NCBI RefSeq assembly: GCF_041956535.1
Contig: NW_027192197.1
Location: 827,647-891,646 of the forward strand
Direction: 5' to 3'
Source of the DNA: Calcarisporiella thermophila CBS 279.70
Taxonomy: Eukaryota > Fungi > Calcarisporiellomycota
Length of the DNA: 64,000 nt
Both the position numbers and the translations under genes were made by a program. The notes under the pieces were generated by a model, which ran no database searches, was not told where the DNA came from, and saw only the letters and a program-made list of their open reading frames with translations. Numbering within the stretch: the first letter of the stretch is position 1; every line of letters begins with the position of its first letter. Below, one piece after another: positions 49,839 to 62,337 of this stretch.

Positions 49839-52775
49839 CTAAACAATCCCTCCCCATACCAGTTCGGCCGCCTCCTCAAGAGTGCTGCACTCCCCAATCG
49901 CCGGCGAGCAAAACTCGACCATCGACCGAGAAGCGCCCGCGAATTCCCACACCAACAAATAACACATCGCCCGCTTTACAAACTCTTGTGTGCTGATTCG
50001 CGGCCCTTCGGGGCCGCCGTTGTACACTTGAATGAATCGCCGTAAGAGCGGCTTTGAGGCGCACATGGTTGTGAAAAAGAGAGGAATGAGCTCGAACAGA
50101 GGATCGCCGCCGAAAGGGAACGCGTCGCCGAAATCCACTAGGGTCACAGGGCGCCAATTCAATTGCAATTGGTGTTGAGGATGAGAAGGAGCCGGCGGTG
50201 GTGCGGTGGGCGGAGGGGGGTAGTATGGCGGGGGCATATTGCCGTTCTTGTTTGGAGCTACATGTGTGGGAGGCGTGCATCCGACTTTGCCTAGAAAATT
50301 AGAAGGATTTAAATCGCCGTGCAGCACGTTCACATCGAGGTATTGGCCATCTTGGCGGGCGAGAGCTAGGAGTTCGGCCCCTGAGCCCGGGAGGTAGCTC
50401 TCGATCTGACCAATAAGATGAGGGGGTAATATCTGCCAGGAGGCATGCATTTTTGCAGCAAGCGCGATGCGGCGGTCAAGGTAAGCTTCGAATTTTTCGA
50501 CGACCGGTTTATTTTCGTCGACAGCATCCTCGGGCCGGGAGCTGAAGGAGTGAGTCGCAATGGCGTCGGCATCAAGGATGCTTTGCGATGGCATTTCATC
50601 CAACGGAGGCAAGGTGTGTAGTGCTACAGAGACGGTTTAGAAGCAAAAAGGCTCAGTAGGTAATTGGGGTGAATAAGCGTTCTCATGAGGAGTGCTCACC
50701 TTTGATAGTCTCAGCCATCCATTCCACCGTCTCGCTCCATATCACGACGTTCTCCTGCTTGGGGTCGGGTTCCAGCGCGTCATCCAAGCCATTGGCCGCA
50801 TAGCCTGCATTCATCAATTGGGCCAGAGATACCTCCAAAGAGAAGTTCCCGTTAAGCAAGCTCATGACATTCTCGGGCGTGTCTGCCAACGCATCCACTT
50901 CAAGCACTATGAATGGCCACGGCCAAGGCGCGGAGGACCGATCGGCATAGAGCATACCACTTCCCAACAGGCGCGAAAAACGAGAGGATAGTTTTGGCGA
51001 AAGGTGGTCGCGAAGGCGGGCATAGGTGGATGTCTCCGCGAAATAAGACCGCATTCCACCGTAAAGATGCGAAAAAAATTTGACGACCCGGCGGCCGGTT
51101 TTAAAGAGCTGAACATAGGAAAAAGGTGAGTTTGTGGGGTACCAAAAAAGCCAAAAGAATGAAAAGGCGACTCTTTACCGGATTACTTCCATCCATCAAA
51201 GCCTTCACTTCGCTCTCCTTCACGGTTTCTTCACAGCGCCGCAACACCTCCACCACCCGTCCTGCCCACACCTTAAGGTCATGGAAGCTCTTCGCATAGG
51301 CTCGTGCGTTGTCATAGCCTTCTGCGCGCACAATTGCATCCGCCGTTGGATTTTGTGACGCCGCCACACGATGGACGAACAATTCTAGCTCAGGCCGCCC
51401 CCTCACCAGAGCTGCTCGGAAACTCTCCCACAACTTGGCACGTTTAGGTTTCGTTTCGTGCGCCAACGCTTGACACACATTCTCAAGGTTGCCGACACTC
51501 ACAAAATTCTGCGTGACGGCCACGGTGTCTTCGATATTGAGGACCATATGCCACCACCCACTAGGAACGAAAATCGTCTCACCGGGGCGCTGAAGGACCT
51601 CCATCGGGCGCATTTCCGGGGGGAGCGTGGGGTACACCTCCAGATACCACATCAACGAGGTGGGCGAATCGAAACTATGCTCATCTTCTTCGTCGCCGCT
51701 TGCATTTTCATCGCCCCCTCTTTTGCATGTCGTGACTCGGACACCGGGTGGGACGACGTGTGGCGGGTAGAGAGCCCAGCGCTTATATCCGCTTAGCAGG
51801 GTGTTCCACGCAGACGTACCCGACGGATCCACGTGCCACGACGCCCCAGAACGAGCGGGGCCCACGATGATCCAGCGAAAAGGCGGCCGCTCATCTCCTT
51901 GAAGCCACTCGAAATAATCCTCGCGGAAATATTTGGGCACTTCATACTCCTCGATCATATGGGGCCACTTTTCCCCAAAGGCAGGGTCGAAGACATACAA
52001 GGGGGTTTCATCATGCTGGTCGCGAGCATAGTCGATGTAAGCACGTGCCGTCATTTTTATATACTCGTGCTGGCCTCCCTGCTCATTAGCAACTCGCAGC
52101 GGAATATCTCCCAAGCGATCGGCGAGTTTGTCGAGGCGCCACTCTGTCATTGCTGGCCAGCGTTCTACACCACCGTTTTGGAGGAGGGCTGGAGTGAGGG
52201 TCTGGTCGTAGCGGGCAGCAAATTGCTCGACCGTGAGACAGCTAGCATCTTCAATGGAGATTTGCTGGAATGGAAATGCGGGCGGGGGCGGAAAATAGTT
52301 AACCAGATTCATGTTACAGCGGGACCACTTGGTATAGAGATAAAACGACTGAATATCTACAAAACAGTAGGAATTGGGTCATAATGCTAGGTTGGGTGCG
52401 TTCAATGAGGAAAGCTAACCTGGGAAATACAATGTCTTTTGATTTAATGGATGCCATCTTATTTGCTCCTCCTCTTCTGCACTCAACTCCTTTGGAAACA
52501 GAAAAGTAAGCAGCCACGACCTTCTATATTTGAAGTGGGCCATGGTGTCCGCGTCTTTTCCCCAGCGGTCCAGACAGTGGCGCCGCCATTGCTGATCCTC
52601 TCGACAAAACACATAAAAGAAGCGACTTGTACGGGACGCGCGAGCTAGATCCTTTTATTGTAAAAGAATGAGCGATGAAATCCCAGGAGTCGATCAAGGA
52701 GTGGATTACCGTGGGATCAAGAAGCGGAAGGATTTTCTCCGCTATGATGTGATGGGGAAGATCTGTGAAATGCAT
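49839..52775 (-). CDS. F-box + JmjC (JMJD6-like) + APH/choline-kinase-fold protein, multi-exon
   Basis: F-box FTDLPHHII..IL..LD..DLARASRTSRFFY. JmjC GPARSGASWHVDP..KRWAL..PGETIFVPSGWWHMVLN..AVTQNF. C-terminal VLHGDLNPSN and LVDFGDA. Confidence 0.85.
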
Positions 52776-53121: not shown

Positions 53122-55167
53122 TCAGATAAACGAGTACTTTACTGCTCCACTCTTCTCGACCGAGGATTTTTCAATAGCCTGATCCTCTTCAACCCACGCG
53201 TCTTTGTGCACCGGCAACTGAACTCCTTTGAACCAATCGTACTCTTCTGAATCCACCGCGCTCCGGGCCTCGGAATCCGAGCGTTTTTCCAGCGACTGCT
53301 GTGCTCCTTGGTGCGGTTGATGGGGGCCAAAGCTCGGGCGGCTAGGCCCAAGCGCTTTGTCCTCTTCCGAAACAATCGCCACTTCCGGCAGAGTTAATTG
53401 CAACTGGTGCTGCAGAGATGGGGAGAGCTCTGCCTTCTGCGGCTGTTGAATAGGCAGGGAAGGGGATTCGAACACCACGGTTCTCATCTTATGGTTCCTC
53501 TTGGAAGCGTCGGCCCCACCCATGGAACTGGACGCTGTGATGGTACTTCTACCTATGGCGATATAGTCCACAGGCTTTACTACGAAGTGTTGGATGCCCA
53601 GATACAGTGAATCATGCGTATGCCCATCCATATCGGCCTCCTCCGAGTTTGCTGACACAGGTTCGCGGAACTTTCGCTGCTGTTCCAAATCAAGATTTTG
53701 CATCAGGGCAAGCGAATCATAAATGGGCGCAAATCTGGAAGGGCTGTGCCCGTTAGGAGAGGTCGCTGGGTCGTGATCCGGGCCTGATTGCGTCGATGTG
53801 CGCATATGCGAAAACGCTTGCGCCAGGTAGCTGTATTTAGAGAGGCGCGAGCTCAAACGACCCCCACTCGTTGCTGAAACCGTCCGCGCCCCGTTACTCT
53901 CAGCCGATCGCACGTCGGAATAGGCGTTTACGTCCTCGGAAGAGTATGCATTCTCGGCACCCAAGGGAACGGCGTTGGGTGCATCCGCTGAGGAGGGCAC
54001 GTCTCCCCTTGGTGTGGGGAAAACGACGGCCTGGTCCCCGATGGTGAGGACCATGGAAGGAGATATTCCGCGATTATTCAATCGGCGCCCTGGGCGACTA
54101 GCATAGCGCGCGACCCTCCAACCCATGAAGGATATCAACAGGACCCCAGAAAGGGCGCCCATGATGATGCCTGTGAGTCTGCTTGAGCTATTTCCCAAGG
54201 AGTTCTGCGCGGGGTTTTCCACCGCAAGCACGGTCGATGACTGGGCACAGTGACCTCGGTCGCAAATATTCGACTGACACTGCGACGAAGATTGACACGT
54301 CGACCCGATGGCAAGCTTGGGCAGACAACTCAACGACGCGGTATCGCAGTAAAAGCTGTCGACCAAGCATACGAACTCGGTGGCATTGTTCGGGTTAACA
54401 AGGCATGCGGGTGGCTGCATGGAGGTGGGGAGCGGGGCGGGGGGTGATGGAGGAGTGGCTACGGCCACGGAGAGAGCAGACGAGCCAAAAGCAATGTTCT
54501 CGGTTTGGGCCAGGACACTAGCCTGAGTTGGGGAGTCTAAGGAGACCGCCACGGGGCTGCTGGCGCTCGACGACGGCGTATTTTCGGGAGTTGGAGCGAC
54601 TTCCGGAATGGAAATAGATGAGGAAGCAGAGGTTGGGGTGGAAGTCGGGGATTCCACCGTCTCTGGCTTTGGTTCTGGTTTGCGCTTTTCGCTTGAATCC
54701 GCCTTGGCTTCTTGTTTTCGTTTGTCGGAGAGCAGTTCGGGTTTCAGCGGTTGTTCAGGCTCTTTCTTCTCTTCCTTCCTTTCCGTCTCTTCCTTCTTTA
54801 TATCGCCCCGGTCGTCCCCGTTACCCTCTTTTCTCTGGTCGAGTAGTAGCGCCTTATTTTTCCCGATGGCGCTCTTTCCGATCTCATCCTCCTTGTCGCC
54901 GTTTTCATTGTTACCGACACCATTGTTATTGTTTCTATTGATGCTGGCTTCCTCGTTGTTGCCTTCCCCGTCTCTGTCATTCTCGTCATCCCTGTCTCCG
55001 TCATCCTTGTCATCCCCCGGTCTGAACTTTTCATCGTCTTCAAACTCGCCGTCGCCGATTCCGGGAATGAACGCGAGCGCTGGGTTCCCTTTTTTCTTAT
55101 TTTCTTTTCCAGGCTTGAAATTTTTGAGGTTTTTCAGGCCTTTTTTGCCCGGGAAAGGAGGAGGCAT
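53122..55167 (-). CDS. Predicted single-pass membrane protein with Cys-rich extracellular module
   Basis: A 681-aa ORF: charged region, S/T/P stalk, 8-Cys module (CLV..C..YCD..C..C..C..IC..C), TM IIMGALSGVLLISFMGW and a cytoplasmic tail. No signal peptide is evident. Confidence 0.7.
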   Translation of the reverse strand: MPPPFPGKKGLKNLKNFKPGKENKKKGNPALAFIPGIGDGEFEDDEKFRPGDDKDDGDRDDENDRDGEGNNEEASINRNNNNGVGNNENGDKEDEIGKSAIGKNKALLLDQRKEGNGDDRGDIKKEETERKEEKKEPEQPLKPELLSDKRKQEAKADSSEKRKPEPKPETVESPTSTPTSASSSISIPEVAPTPENTPSSSASSPVAVSLDSPTQASVLAQTENIAFGSSALSVAVATPPSPPAPLPTSMQPPACLVNPNNATEFVCLVDSFYCDTASLSCLPKLAIGSTCQSSSQCQSNICDRGHCAQSSTVLAVENPAQNSLGNSSSRLTGIIMGALSGVLLISFMGWRVARYASRPGRRLNNRGISPSMVLTIGDQAVVFPTPRGDVPSSADAPNAVPLGAENAYSSEDVNAYSDVRSAESNGARTVSATSGGRLSSRLSKYSYLAQAFSHMRTSTQSGPDHDPATSPNGHSPSRFAPIYDSLALMQNLDLEQQRKFREPVSANSEEADMDGHTHDSLYLGIQHFVVKPVDYIAIGRSTITASSSMGGADASKRNHKMRTVVFESPSLPIQQPQKAELSPSLQHQLQLTLPEVAIVSEEDKALGPSRPSFGPHQPHQGAQQSLEKRSDSEARSAVDSEEYDWFKGVQLPVHKDAWVEEDQAIEKSSVEKSGAVKYSFI

Positions 55168-56437: not shown

Positions 56438-57100
56438 NNNNNNNNNNNNNNNNNNNNNNNNNNNNNNNNNNNNNNNNNNNNNNNNNNNNNNNNNNNNNNN
56501 NNNNNNNNNNNNNNNNNNNNNNNNNNNNNNNNNNNNNNNNNNNNNNNNNNNNNNNNNNNNNNNNNNNNNNNNNNNNNNNNNNNNNNNNNNNNNNNNNNNN
56601 NNNNNNNNNNNNNNNNNNNNNNNNNNNNNNNNNNNNNNNNNNNNNNNNNNNNNNNNNNNNNNNNNNNNNNNNNNNNNNNNNNNNNNNNNNNNNNNNNNNN
56701 NNNNNNNNNNNNNNNNNNNNNNNNNNNNNNNNNNNNNNNNNNNNNNNNNNNNNNNNNNNNNNNNNNNNNNNNNNNNNNNNNNNNNNNNNNNNNNNNNNNN
56801 NNNNNNNNNNNNNNNNNNNNNNNNNNNNNNNNNNNNNNNNNNNNNNNNNNNNNNNNNNNNNNNNNNNNNNNNNNNNNNNNNNNNNNNNNNNNNNNNNNNN
56901 NNNNNNNNNNNNNNNNNNNNNNNNNNNNNNNNNNNNNNNNNNNNNNNNNNNNNNNNNNNNNNNNNNNNNNNNNNNNNNNNNNNNNNNNNNNNNNNNNNNN
57001 NNNNNNNNNNNNNNNNNNNNNNNNNNNNNNNNNNNNNNNNNNNNNNNNNNNNNNNNNNNNNNNNNNNNNNNNNNNNNNNNNNNNNNNNNNNNNNNNNNNN
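56438..57100. other. Assembly gap (663 N)
   Basis: Run of N flanked by GA-rich simple sequence. Confidence 1.
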
Positions 57101-57165: not shown

Positions 57166-60100
57166 CTATACAAAGTCCTTGAACCGCCCGTCCACCTTTT
57201 TAGGAGTCTCTTGCACCACCAGGTCCTCTTCGCCATCGGAGAACCCACCGCCCGCGCCGTTGCCCATGCCCGGCGTCCGGCTGTGTGCGAGGGGAGTTTG
57301 GGGTACGGCCAGCGTCGGCGTTGGTCGTTGCGGAGTATGTGGGATATCGGTGGGGGTGGTGGGGGGCGGGGGGGTGGATGCTCGCACGGGGGAATCGGAC
57401 GGATCGGCTCGCCTTCTTCCAAGCATGCCCTGCGGAAAAACAACCAAGCACAACAAACAGTATTTGCATTAGCGAAAAAGAGAAGAGCCACTGTCATGTA
57501 AAAGCAGAAAACGAAATGTACCCTCCCCCGTCGCGTCGGTGTGGTGTCCGGTCGGTGGCCCATCGTCTCACCACGCTGCTTCCGCTTGCCGGGAGTGGTC
57601 TGCCCGCCTGCCCGTTTGGCGCCCACCAGCACCTCGGTCTGCCGGTCGCCCGTGGCCCCTGACAAAATGGAAACAGAAGAAGAGAGCTCGAGTAAGTTCA
57701 GAGGACGGGTGGCCCCTCACTTGAACATGCTTACGTTTGGGCTCCTCCCCCTTTCTTTTCAGCTTACTGGCACCTCCCCTCGCCGCCCCCACATTTGACG
57801 AGGACGAGGAGGAGATGATGGCGTTCTTGATACTGCTGGTCAACTTTTTCGTCATCTCCACTTCTCGATTTTTGAACAGAGAAGACGTCACCACAATTCC
57901 GCTTCGCCGGGCTGCATCGATGGCCGGCAGCAACTCGCCGTTGGACCGGGAGTTTTCCTTCCGAGAGGGTCCTCCCTGATGAGAGGTAAACGAGGAGGTG
58001 GAGAGAAGAGAGGAGGTTCTGGACGGGCGCGCCAAGCTCGGGAACTCGTTTTCCCGTGTCTCGGGCACGAATCGCCCAAGTGCACTGATGAAGACATCAA
58101 AATCCCCCTTCTGAATCTCGATAATCCAGGGCTCAAAGTTGTCGAAGCGACCAGAGATGCCGGCCACGCGGGCAGCCTCCTGAAACGCCATTCCAAATCG
58201 ACTATGGCATGAATAAAAGGTGAATGCCGAAGGGGGGGGGGGAAGGCAGGTTACTAAGCCCATCCACACTTACTTTCTTCGGGTGGCTCCATATTGGTAG
58301 CCTCCATATATTCCCACCAACAAATAGGTATCTTTCACCTGGTTATAGGCTGCAATCAGCAGAGGAAGATGCTTACTACTTCCTGCCTCCTAAGCAAGGG
58401 AAAAAAAAAAGAGAATCGCGGCGGAGCCGGACCCTGTTACATCTTTTGCAGCGCATTCATCCAGAAGGCGGTGGCACCTACCCGTATTGCTTCTGAAATA
58501 TATAAGCCGATCCGCTCTAACACCAAGGGTCGTACACATAAACCCAGATTGGCTCCATCCTGCAACACTGCGAGGCGAAATCTTGGCTTGTCATGACCTT
58601 TGGGCTGTTTGGAGAACCCACGGCGTTTCATGGTTGCATTGGCTTCTTGTGCAATCGATTTTTGAAGCTGCTTGAAAATAGCAATGCCCTTGACCAGTAT
58701 ATTGAGGCTATTATTCTGGTGTCTAATTTTATAAATGAAAAAAGGAGAGCAAGAAAATAAATTTGTTATGCTCTGCCGCTGAAGGAGAAATAGGATGTTT
58801 ACGTGTCGAGGGCATCGAACGCAGAATAAAAGTTTTCCAGCCATCGATCAGCATGGTGGTGTACGAGCTTCCCTCCGCTGCCACCGCCGCCGCCATCCCT
58901 ATTATCATCGGCCCCAAGGCCCCATTCCACCTCAGAAGAGGTTGAGGCAAGCAACCCCGTGAGCGAGTGGACAATGTCTCCGGCAGCGAACACCCCTTTG
59001 TACCCAAACGTGCGGTAGAAAGATGGGTAAAATATGTGCTCCAAGTCGTAGCGAGGCGCAACCTCTTCGAGTTTTTCTCGCAGAGTACGCTTGAACTCAC
59101 GGCGCATGTCATTATAATCCTCCTGAACCTCACGCAGCGGTATACTGGATTTGAAACGCACCAGTAAGGATTACCAAAGAGAAATAAAAAGGAGATGAAA
59201 ATAATAAAACTGCCACCCACCCCATTTTTGCCAGCATGTTCCTCAAGCGCTTCTGGCCAGACTCGTTCCATATACGCAGCTTGGTGGCGACATAATTTGA
59301 ATAAAATAAACTATTATACACGGACCAATGTCGATAAGCTACAATATTCAATGTGGAGAGAAGCGATAGGGTTAAGGAAAATCCGTTTGTGGGACGGCAC
59401 TAAGATCTGTAGCCAAATAATCCATGAATAAAAGGATATTCTTCTTGGAATCGAATTCCATGGTCATCAGGCCCTTTCGCAGAAAAAATATCGGAGTCCT
59501 TGTCAAAATTCAGTCGTGACACCTCGTCCCTAAACCCATCGACCTCGAGCAAATAGCTCTCTAAATCGATAAAGCCAGAGAGGTATTGACTTGTCACCCC
59601 GACAATGGCCAACCTGGAAAGAAAAAAAATATGAGATATCCCCTCACCATGCTACAATATAAATTCTAGACTGAGTACCACAACTGGTCGTTAGTTGTTT
59701 TAGAGATACTTGTTGATATTGAATAAGCTTGGGCCGAAGCTGAATTACCAAACCATGTTCCATTATTATAGTATCGATGTATGATGGCTCGATGTTTTTC
59801 TCGCGATTCTCGTGAAACTCGGCGAGATTTTCTCGGTAAAGAGTTCTGCACAAAAGGAGTCGTCAAAAAATGAGCCTATGTGTTCCTATGGGTCGGCCAT
59901 GACCCCACTGACCTTTTCTGGGGATTTTCTCCGTTTCTTTGGCACCAGGTTTTCATTATTCTCGTCATTCAGTACCTCTCTATTTTCAGCGTCGCTTTCC
60001 TCTGATGCTTCATCCTCTTCCATTTCGCTCTCTTCCGACTCCTCGAACTAGGCGAAGAGAGTATTGGCAATATTCGAAGTTAAAATTGGACAAACTACTA

Positions 60101-60884
60101 GCATAGTGAGGGATAAACTGGCCTACCTCGATAGATTCGTACGCCTCTCTTACATCTTGTAATTGCGTCTCGATTTCACCATCGTCAAGTACAAGTATCT
60201 ATTAGCTCGCGAGATATTCGAATAAATATTACGCAATAAAAACAACACTTGAAAAGAACATGTAAGCCGATCCCACCTGATTACTTCCAAATATATTGTG
60301 TAGATTAAGAGGTCTATGGCTATCCATGATGATGACATTTATATCAGGAGATAGTTCAAAATCCTCAGCGATATCCATCATTCCGCCACAGTTGATCATG
60401 AAAATTGTTTTAACCTGTTTGCCATCGGATCAGCTAATTTCAAATTCACAATTCACAAATGGGTCAGAAAGAACTATATATTACGTGTTGGTTTATGATT
60501 TTCGATCTAGTCTTGGCGTCAGTGTAGTTCGCAACAGGCACGATTTCATATTCAATCACATCTGACTTAAAGAGGGTCTAATATGGAAATAGCGATAAGA
60601 GACGTGGGGAAGAAGAGTGAGCAGAGAGAGAGAGAAGAAAAAGAAATGGGTTGAAAATTTCTCCAAGCGCTTATATGGGAAAAATATTCTCAGAAATGAG
60701 CAAAGGGATCGATTCTGATAACCAGTTGAAAAAAAAAAGACACTTAGAAGTTGACACTCACTACGAGTATTCGACATGCACACAATGCATCAACGTCCGG
60801 TGGTACGAAGATTAAACACTTTCCATGGCTGCGAATAATAGTATCATAGGCTTCCCCGATCTTCTCATGGGGAATGCACACCAT
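57166..60884 (-). CDS. CDC45: Cdc45 replication initiation factor with a ~247-aa Sld3/Treslin-like C-terminal extension
   Basis: Cdc45 motifs LIFVPPDVDALCACRIL, INCGG, IDSHRP, LWLAIVGVTSQYL, YRHWSVYNS, RLRNMLAKMG and RFGMAFQEAA..FDNFE..IIEI. The reading frame continues past the core through introns 57659-57734 and 57430-57521 to a TAG at 57166. Confidence 0.9.
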
Positions 60885-60988: not shown

Positions 60989-61052
60989 ACGCGAAAAGGT
61001 TGGAAAAACGCGAAAAGCGCGTCACAAAATTATTTTGAAGATCCTGCCGCGT
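60989..61052. promoter_or_regulatory. Cluster of SCB/MCB/E2F-like CGCG elements upstream of CDC45
   Basis: ACGCGAAAA at 60989 and 61008, GCGCGT at 61017 and CCGCGT at 61047, all 105-170 nt upstream of the ATG. Confidence 0.6.
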
Positions 61053-62073: not shown

Positions 62074-62337
62074 ATGTCTGACACTGGACGCAAAGGATTC
62101 ATGGAGCAGGCCAAGGAGAAGATGACTCCAGAGGACCAAAAGTCCACCGGCCAAAAAATAAGTGAGTCGGTTTCGGGCGCAGCCGACAGGATGGCGGCGG
62201 GAGTTACCCCCGAAAGCCAGAAATCGTACGGCCAGCAGGCGGCGGATTCAGCGCGCGGTGGAGCCGACCGTACCAGGGAGCAAGGCTCCTCGATGCTTGA
62301 CAAAGCGAAAGACGCTCTTGGCATGAACAAAAAGTGA
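62074..62337 (+). CDS. HSP12: Hsp12/Hsp9 small heat-shock (LEA-like) protein
   Basis: MSDTGRKGFMEQAKEKMTPEDQKS..ADRMAAGVTPESQKS matches the Hsp9/Hsp12 pattern. Confidence 0.9.
   Translation: MSDTGRKGFMEQAKEKMTPEDQKSTGQKISESVSGAADRMAAGVTPESQKSYGQQAADSARGGADRTREQGSSMLDKAKDALGMNKK

Follow-up and report, generated by a model that had tools for sequence, protein, structure and literature searches.

Cdc45 of Calcarisporiella thermophila Bears a C-Terminal Tail Reminiscent of the Regulatory Half of Sld3/Treslin

The CDC45 Locus Encodes a Complete Cdc45 Core

Calcarisporiella thermophila, a thermophile of the Mucoromycota (PMC11393059), has only one CDC45 locus in its 28-Mb, 116-contig genome, located on the minus strand of the 64,000-nucleotide stretch of DNA that we analyzed (the window). 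Using one core exon as the query, we found a public protein, KAL1922012.1 / VTP21DRAFT_10654 (866 aa), which is a 100% identical match, and placing this protein on the DNA gives a gene of 14 exons running from the ATG at 60884 to the TAG at 57168-57166. Exons were joined by script, with frame, stop and GC3 checks only. Single-exon searches were done with the window sequence, and multi-exon searches with KAL1922012.1, which is equal to the joined product.

The first 619 residues (58078-60884, minus strand), encoded by exons 1-11 and 41 further codons at the start of exon 12, correspond to a complete, single-copy Cdc45. The PF02724 DHH/DHHA1 model matches aa 24-619 with 573 bits over positions 2-621 of 624, and the last core residue is L619, at window position 58078. 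This core displays the Cdc45 fold seen in CMG, with a Foldseek E of 9e-45 to chain E of yeast CMG and a TM by target of ~0.88 when the AlphaFold2 model is compared with CMG Cdc45. In that model, a confident Cdc45 fold extends to ~aa 630 and is followed by a mostly disordered tail. Intron 7, which lies inside the core (59353-59439, minus strand), is of the U12-type AT-AC class, with the donor ATATCCTTT, the branch site TTCCTTAAC and an AC end; CDC45 of mouse and human are likewise minor-intron genes (PMC12332006).

Several CGCG-core elements (60989-61040; GACGCGCT and two copies of TTCGCGT) precede the CDC45 ATG by around 110-140 nt and resemble G1/S sites of the E2F/MBF type, and an HSP9/HSP12 gene (62074-62337, plus strand) is divergent from CDC45. 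The window also contains, on the minus strand, a gene for a JmjC/cupin hydroxylase domain protein (51101-52312) and a single-ORF gene for a 681-aa protein (53122-55167). The N-terminal half of the latter is charged and rich in Ser/Pro, and the protein also has a single transmembrane segment and a Cys-rich module weakly matching EB/Dickkopf, but no obvious signal peptide.

The Cdc45 Frame Continues for 247 Codons beyond Its Usual End

The Cdc45 frame continues for 247 codons beyond the usual end of the protein, with 114 open codons directly after the core (58077-57736). Junction exon 12 (57735-58201, 467 nt) runs in one unbroken frame from the C-terminal residues of Cdc45 through tail codon 114. 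It is followed, still on the minus strand, by the 76-nt phase 1 intron 12 (57659-57734, GTAAGC..CAG), which is T-rich relative to its flanking exons, and by exon 13 (57522-57658, 137 nt), a basic linker with full CDK sites at T755 and T773. The 92-nt phase 0 intron 13 (57430-57521, GTACAT..CAG), with a branch-like GCTAAT, precedes exon 14 (57166-57429), which encodes 87 Pro/Thr-rich residues with eight S/T-P sites and ends with the TAG stop. An earlier note on this DNA had given the coordinates, introns, phases and exon sizes of the tail correctly throughout, and the public 866-aa model has the same two introns. This public model is a second prediction and is perhaps ab initio, since SnowyOwl took RNA-seq only "when available" (PMC11393059).

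Several features speak to the integrity of this arrangement. Judged by base composition, a run of 114 open codons has a P of ~0.015. Codon use supports the frame in the junction exon and in the last exon, exon 13 being uninformative. Escape to a normal-length Cdc45 via a cryptic intron was rejected for want of a credible one: every intron that would restore the normal length combines a weak donor with a pyrimidine-poor acceptor (<=53% pyrimidines), and the lone pyrimidine-rich acceptor (57976) is reachable from weak donors only, in which case 29-150 extra residues would remain. A repeat-mediated misjoin was also rejected, there being no repeat at the junction, and GC3 is continuous over it (0.61 before, 0.70 after). 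The join between Cdc45 and its tail, known here from the DNA of one assembly, is confirmed at the level of that assembly. A search against Rfam gave no match. Downstream, a 617-base N gap in the assembly (56484-57100), flanked by C/T-rich simple sequence, starts 65 bases past the CDC45 stop and hides the 3' UTR and poly(A) site.

The Tail Is Found in No Other Sampled Cdc45

Among the other Cdc45 proteins with an intact C terminus (n = 53), which represent every major fungal group in the sample, all but one end 4-11 residues past the core, and the remaining protein has an unrelated acidic tail. C. thermophila departs from this norm of ending ~10 residues past the core, with 247 residues against 4-11. 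The earlier note had suggested looking for the same extension in related fungi, and none of the 53 intact proteins sampled has it; the comparators identified by name are Mycotypha, Pilobolus and Gamsiella (Mucorales, Mortierellomycotina), Basidiobolus, several chytrids, blastoclads and basidiomycetes, a set from which Umbelopsidales, Endogonales and Glomeromycotina are absent. Two Cdc45 records with 178-aa extensions were set aside as unrelated, one having an acidic tail and the other a truncated core with read-through. When the tail or the junction exon was compared with 5.8 billion proteins, the self-match alone was returned, and metagenome, viral and prokaryote contigs contained no relative of the tail and no additional Sld3.

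The Tail Contains a Pair of CDK Sites of the Dpb11/TopBP1-Docking Type

The 619-aa core has just two S/T-P sites; the tail has ten, five of which are full CDK consensus sites, and a net charge of +18. The earlier note had likewise described the tail as basic, with ten S/T-P and five full CDK sites and a pair of threonines 30 residues apart, which are T824 and T854. Day et al. (PMC6175577) describe the ligands of BRCT1/2 as hydrophobic at -3; in ligands of BRCT1, a run of hydrophobic residues leads up to and includes this position. By this rule, two BRCT-type sites can be recognized on the minus strand: LAVPQ-T824-P (57292-57312), where a hydrophobic triplet at -5 to -3 precedes a minimal CDK site, and LVVQE-T854-PKK (57196-57222), which combines the triplet with a full CDK consensus. 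The full triplet occurs at T824 and T854 only, that is, at two of the ten S/T-P sites (P ~0.01 with the sites fixed and 0.002 in free shuffles, for a background of 5% per site). The T854 site resembles both Treslin pS1001 (PMC6175577) and the IQETP site of Eurotiales Sld3, and the Treslin peptides quoted in the earlier note agree with those printed there (PMC6175577). Paired CDK sites are known from yeast Sld3 (T600/S622) and human Treslin (T969/S1001) (PMC8807876). Such a motif is not confined to Sld3, as a similar site is present in the Sld2 of C. thermophila.

As for a possible binding partner, a Dpb11/TopBP1-like multi-BRCT gene is present on contig C4 (1206000-1210200). The Thr and Lys pocket residues of its BRCT1/2, as well as the BRCT2 Trp, are kept, as judged from reading the translation by eye, and this gene likely encodes the partner of the tail.

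A Stretch Resembling the MCM-Recognition Region of Sld3 Precedes the CDK Pair

Yeast Sld3 has, between its STD and CDK sites, two MCM-recognition segments, MRD1 (497-507) and MRD2 (522-539), that bind DDK-freed Mcm6 and Mcm4 (PMC13572456) and are essential (PMC13572456, PMC4864760). To collect Sld3 sequences, metagenomes were scanned with a brief degenerate pattern modelled on ascomycete Sld3, which gave three genuine Sld3 ORFs (PF08639, >560 bits), whose STD drew 120 more Sld3 from Eurotiales. A profile was then made from the post-STD region of 105 Eurotiales Sld3 sequences; these had been gathered through the STD and not by way of the tail motif.

This profile matches aa 648-694 of the C. 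thermophila protein (57853-57993, minus strand), a stretch ending in NREVEM, with 9.3-9.4 bits and an E of 0.17; compared with 4,719 decoys, the junction exon comes out on top. On the organism's own genome, the junction exon is the top of 942 frames (9.4 vs 4.9 bits), and only 1 of 5000 global shuffles and 0 of 5000 local ones reached the score of the tail (P ~2e-4). The best hhalign segment pairs aa 655-693 with Penicillium Sld3, with 42% identity over 38 columns, a probability of 1.8% and an E of 0.027. The core hexapeptide pattern occurs at 8 sites genome-wide, where the CDC45 tail scores 9.4 bits and the others <=3.7 bits; the hexapeptide by itself is no more frequent than expected by chance (8 sites vs 8 in the control), and a fortuitous NREV is present in the Cdc45 core as well, at aa 164. 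A comparison of the tail with Sld3 alignments, as suggested in the earlier note, therefore yields a weak match, which falls below database significance: a score of 9-10 bits is not significant at genome scale, as an unrelated Sgf73 obtained 10.3 bits with the STD profile. The match counts because it lies within a 247-residue region, named beforehand, of Sld3's own partner.

The architecture of the region is also comparable. Models of both the tail and Sld3 show a disordered stretch and then the motif opening a long helix, the helices predicted in the tail by AlphaFold2 being aa 671-676 and 687-710. The motif lies 70 aa from the core end in C. thermophila and ~98 aa from the STD end in Eurotiales Sld3, and the distance from the motif to the final ETP (T854) is 165 aa, compared with 146-169 aa to IQETP in Eurotiales Sld3. 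At the offset (+83) of VQVMATP, the site best conserved in Eurotiales, the tail offers no hydrophobic-led equivalent. The Eurotiales motif may correspond to yeast MRD2, in a tentative register to MRD1/MRD2. Neither Pfam, phmmer nor Atlas (features, structure) gave a usable match for the tail, and PDB sequences matched only Cdc45, Sld3 being represented in the PDB set by STD fragments alone. Since the MRD-like match is found together with the triplet-bearing T824 and T854, the tail looks like an MCM reader plus a Dpb11 dock, and not a dock alone.

Searches for a Standalone Sld3

We searched the C. thermophila genome for a standalone Sld3 with PF08639, PF21855 and PF21854, with a Penicillium STD query and with an STD motif pattern, and none was found by these insensitive searches; nor was a second copy of the motif region found. 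Seven sites fitting the STD pattern were rejected, as was a candidate on contig C5 (592132-595374), which is Sgf73/ataxin-7 (SCA7 domain), matched by the STD profile by chance. As a positive control, Sld2 was found above the cut-off by its Pfam model with the same method: a standalone Sld2/Drc1 gene lies on contig C5 (493486-493878) and has numerous full CDK sites, including one that is hydrophobic-led. The earlier note had proposed that absence of a standalone Sld3 would support a fusion. Sld2 and Dpb11 were indeed found and Sld3 was not, but this absence is unproven and suggestive only, because the Eurotiales profile scores the yeast STD at just 28.6 bits, genes here consist of short exons and the assembly is gapped.

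The Tail as a Probable Fused Regulatory Half of Sld3

Sld3 hallmarks outside the tail are missing from the 866-aa protein, in which no match to the STD (PF08639/PF21855) was found and there is neither room nor a match for the N-terminal Sld7/MTBP-binding beta-barrel. The N-terminal domain of Sld2/RecQ4 (PF11719) is absent from the tail. Because it qualifies as a Cdc45 and has neither the STD nor the N-terminal domain of Sld3, we class the protein as a Cdc45 variant that probably combines the function of Cdc45 with that of the Sld3 regulatory half.

The reading that we favor, and consider fairly probable on these sequence features, is a natural gene fusion. The regulatory portion that forms the C-terminal half of Sld3/Treslin, with its DDK-dependent MCM-recognition region and then the CDK pair that binds Dpb11/TopBP1, would sit on the C terminus of Cdc45 and replace the Sld7-binding and STD domains, a covalent linkage serving in place of Cdc45 binding. 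The proposal of the earlier note that an Sld3 half is fused to Cdc45 thereby gains a second, independent element, the MRD-like stretch, in the order of Sld3, and a triplet confined to T824/T854. It is tempered by homology below database significance, a docking motif not specific to Sld3, relatives that do not have the tail, an unproven absence of standalone Sld3 and the fact that "natural" comes from one assembly. The yeast STD contacts the DHHA1 domain of Cdc45, including E642, eight residues from the C terminus (PMC13572456), and therefore the fusion point would be where Sld3 sits. The yeast STD also touches Mcm2 (PMC13572456), a contact that the fusion would lack, which counts against this reading.

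Three other explanations were weighed. It is unlikely, although well above the other two in our estimate, that the tail is a real, expressed, lineage-specific disordered extension that does not derive from Sld3, with convergent CDK and BRCT-type motifs and a divergent standalone Sld3 persisting elsewhere; the tail would then be an added CDK-controlled Dpb11 dock or a nuclear-import/degradation switch. The lack of a significant family match for the tail, the limited reach of the Sld3 searches, as illustrated by the 28.6 bits of the yeast STD with the Eurotiales profile, and the shortness of BRCT-type sites, common to many ligands (PMC6175577) including Sld2 of C. thermophila, all fit such a convergence, which must however account for a colinear 47-residue match to an Sld3 region, upstream of the CDK pair, in Sld3's own partner. 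We find it improbable that the tail derives from Sld3, by partial duplication or gene split, but replaces nothing, with an STD-containing Sld3 encoded elsewhere still chaperoning Cdc45. Yeast and human cells cannot do without the STD (PMC4864760, PMC8807876), and divergent, intron-split STD exons could evade every search run; three Pfam models, a single-protein search and a motif pattern nevertheless revealed no STD, and no further copy of the motif region turned up. Least probable is an artefact in which a dropped segment joins the 3' end of CDC45 to a neighbor (possibly SLD3) or the transcript ends earlier, for although there is one assembly, with an N gap close to the stop and a public model that may be ab initio, the junction lies within one repeat-free exon of continuous GC3 with no credible escape intron, an accidental in-frame join exactly past the last core helix to partner-like sequence is unlikely, and CDC45 of Basidiobolus has no PF08639-marked neighbor.

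How Such a Fusion Would Work

In yeast, the MRDs of Sld3 anchor on Mcm4/6, and the STD with Cdc45 swings to Mcm2/5 (PMC13572456). By analogy, the MRD-like stretch of a Cdc45-Sld3 fusion would bind Mcm4/Mcm6 after DDK action, and the 70-residue tether would set Cdc45 at Mcm2/5; a C-terminal fusion with such a tether would keep the yeast geometry, and hence remove the need for the STD. S-CDK would then phosphorylate T824 and T854, allowing Dpb11 BRCT1/2 to bind and to bring GINS and Pol epsilon via Sld2, as in yeast. Once the origin has fired, the tail would come off Mcm4/6 and travel with CMG, which would preclude its recycling as a free limiting factor, again extrapolating from yeast. On the fork, Tof1 would clash with MRD binding (PMC13572456). 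We see an even chance that C. thermophila has no free Sld3 and that a single polypeptide recognizes DDK-phosphorylated MCM, brings in Cdc45, docks Dpb11 after CDK action and stays on the moving CMG.

Comparison with Known Systems

The protein is like other Cdc45 (PF02724) over aa 1-619, which are single-copy and have the CMG fold, and differs by its basic, CDK-site-rich tail. Its likeness to Sld3/Treslin-TICRR (PF08639, PF21855) consists of a putative MRD-like stretch and, beyond it, two CDK sites that are hydrophobic-led and spaced 30 aa from each other; in contrast to these proteins, the tail has neither the Sld7/MTBP-binding domain nor the STD, is covalently attached to Cdc45 and remains under every family threshold. 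The Dpb11/TopBP1 BRCT1/2 ligands Crb2/Rad9, RHNO1 and Mdb1 have the same phospho-Thr-Pro motif with hydrophobic residues at -3 or -5 to -3 (PMC6175577), although, unlike the tail, they have no connection to an Sld3-like upstream stretch or to Cdc45. In keeping with the earlier note, which knew of no described natural example, we found no natural Cdc45-Sld3/Treslin fusion in the literature searched, most subscription journals being outside its scope. In engineered yeast bypass alleles (an Sld3-Dpb11 fusion and CDC45-JET1), forced links between Sld3, Dpb11 and Cdc45 can reportedly stand in for a regulated step. Those alleles are artificial and have no CDK control, whereas DDK and CDK control would both persist in the C. 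thermophila fusion, which would drop only the step of Sld3-Cdc45 binding.

Signals from DDK, CDK and the checkpoint converge on Sld3/Treslin, which in current models binds Cdc45 transiently and is then released and reused. If the fusion is true, the STD would be merely a tether and release would be unnecessary; if, in addition, there is no free Sld3, C. thermophila would offer natural proof that neither the STD nor the recycling of Sld3 is needed, as well as a ready-made minimal design for origin firing. One chimeric gene in yeast makes addressable whether Sld3 does anything other than tether, whether recycling determines origin timing and how Sld3 is displaced, for which a clash with Tof1 has been proposed (PMC13572456). 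The sequence retained in the fusion would mark the essential short motifs of Sld3.

Finally, a second GT donor (GTGAGG) is present at window position 57720 (minus strand), 14 nt into intron 12. Its use would put the last two exons in another open frame, in which both BRCT-type sites are lost, and a regulatory isoform arising in this way is possible.
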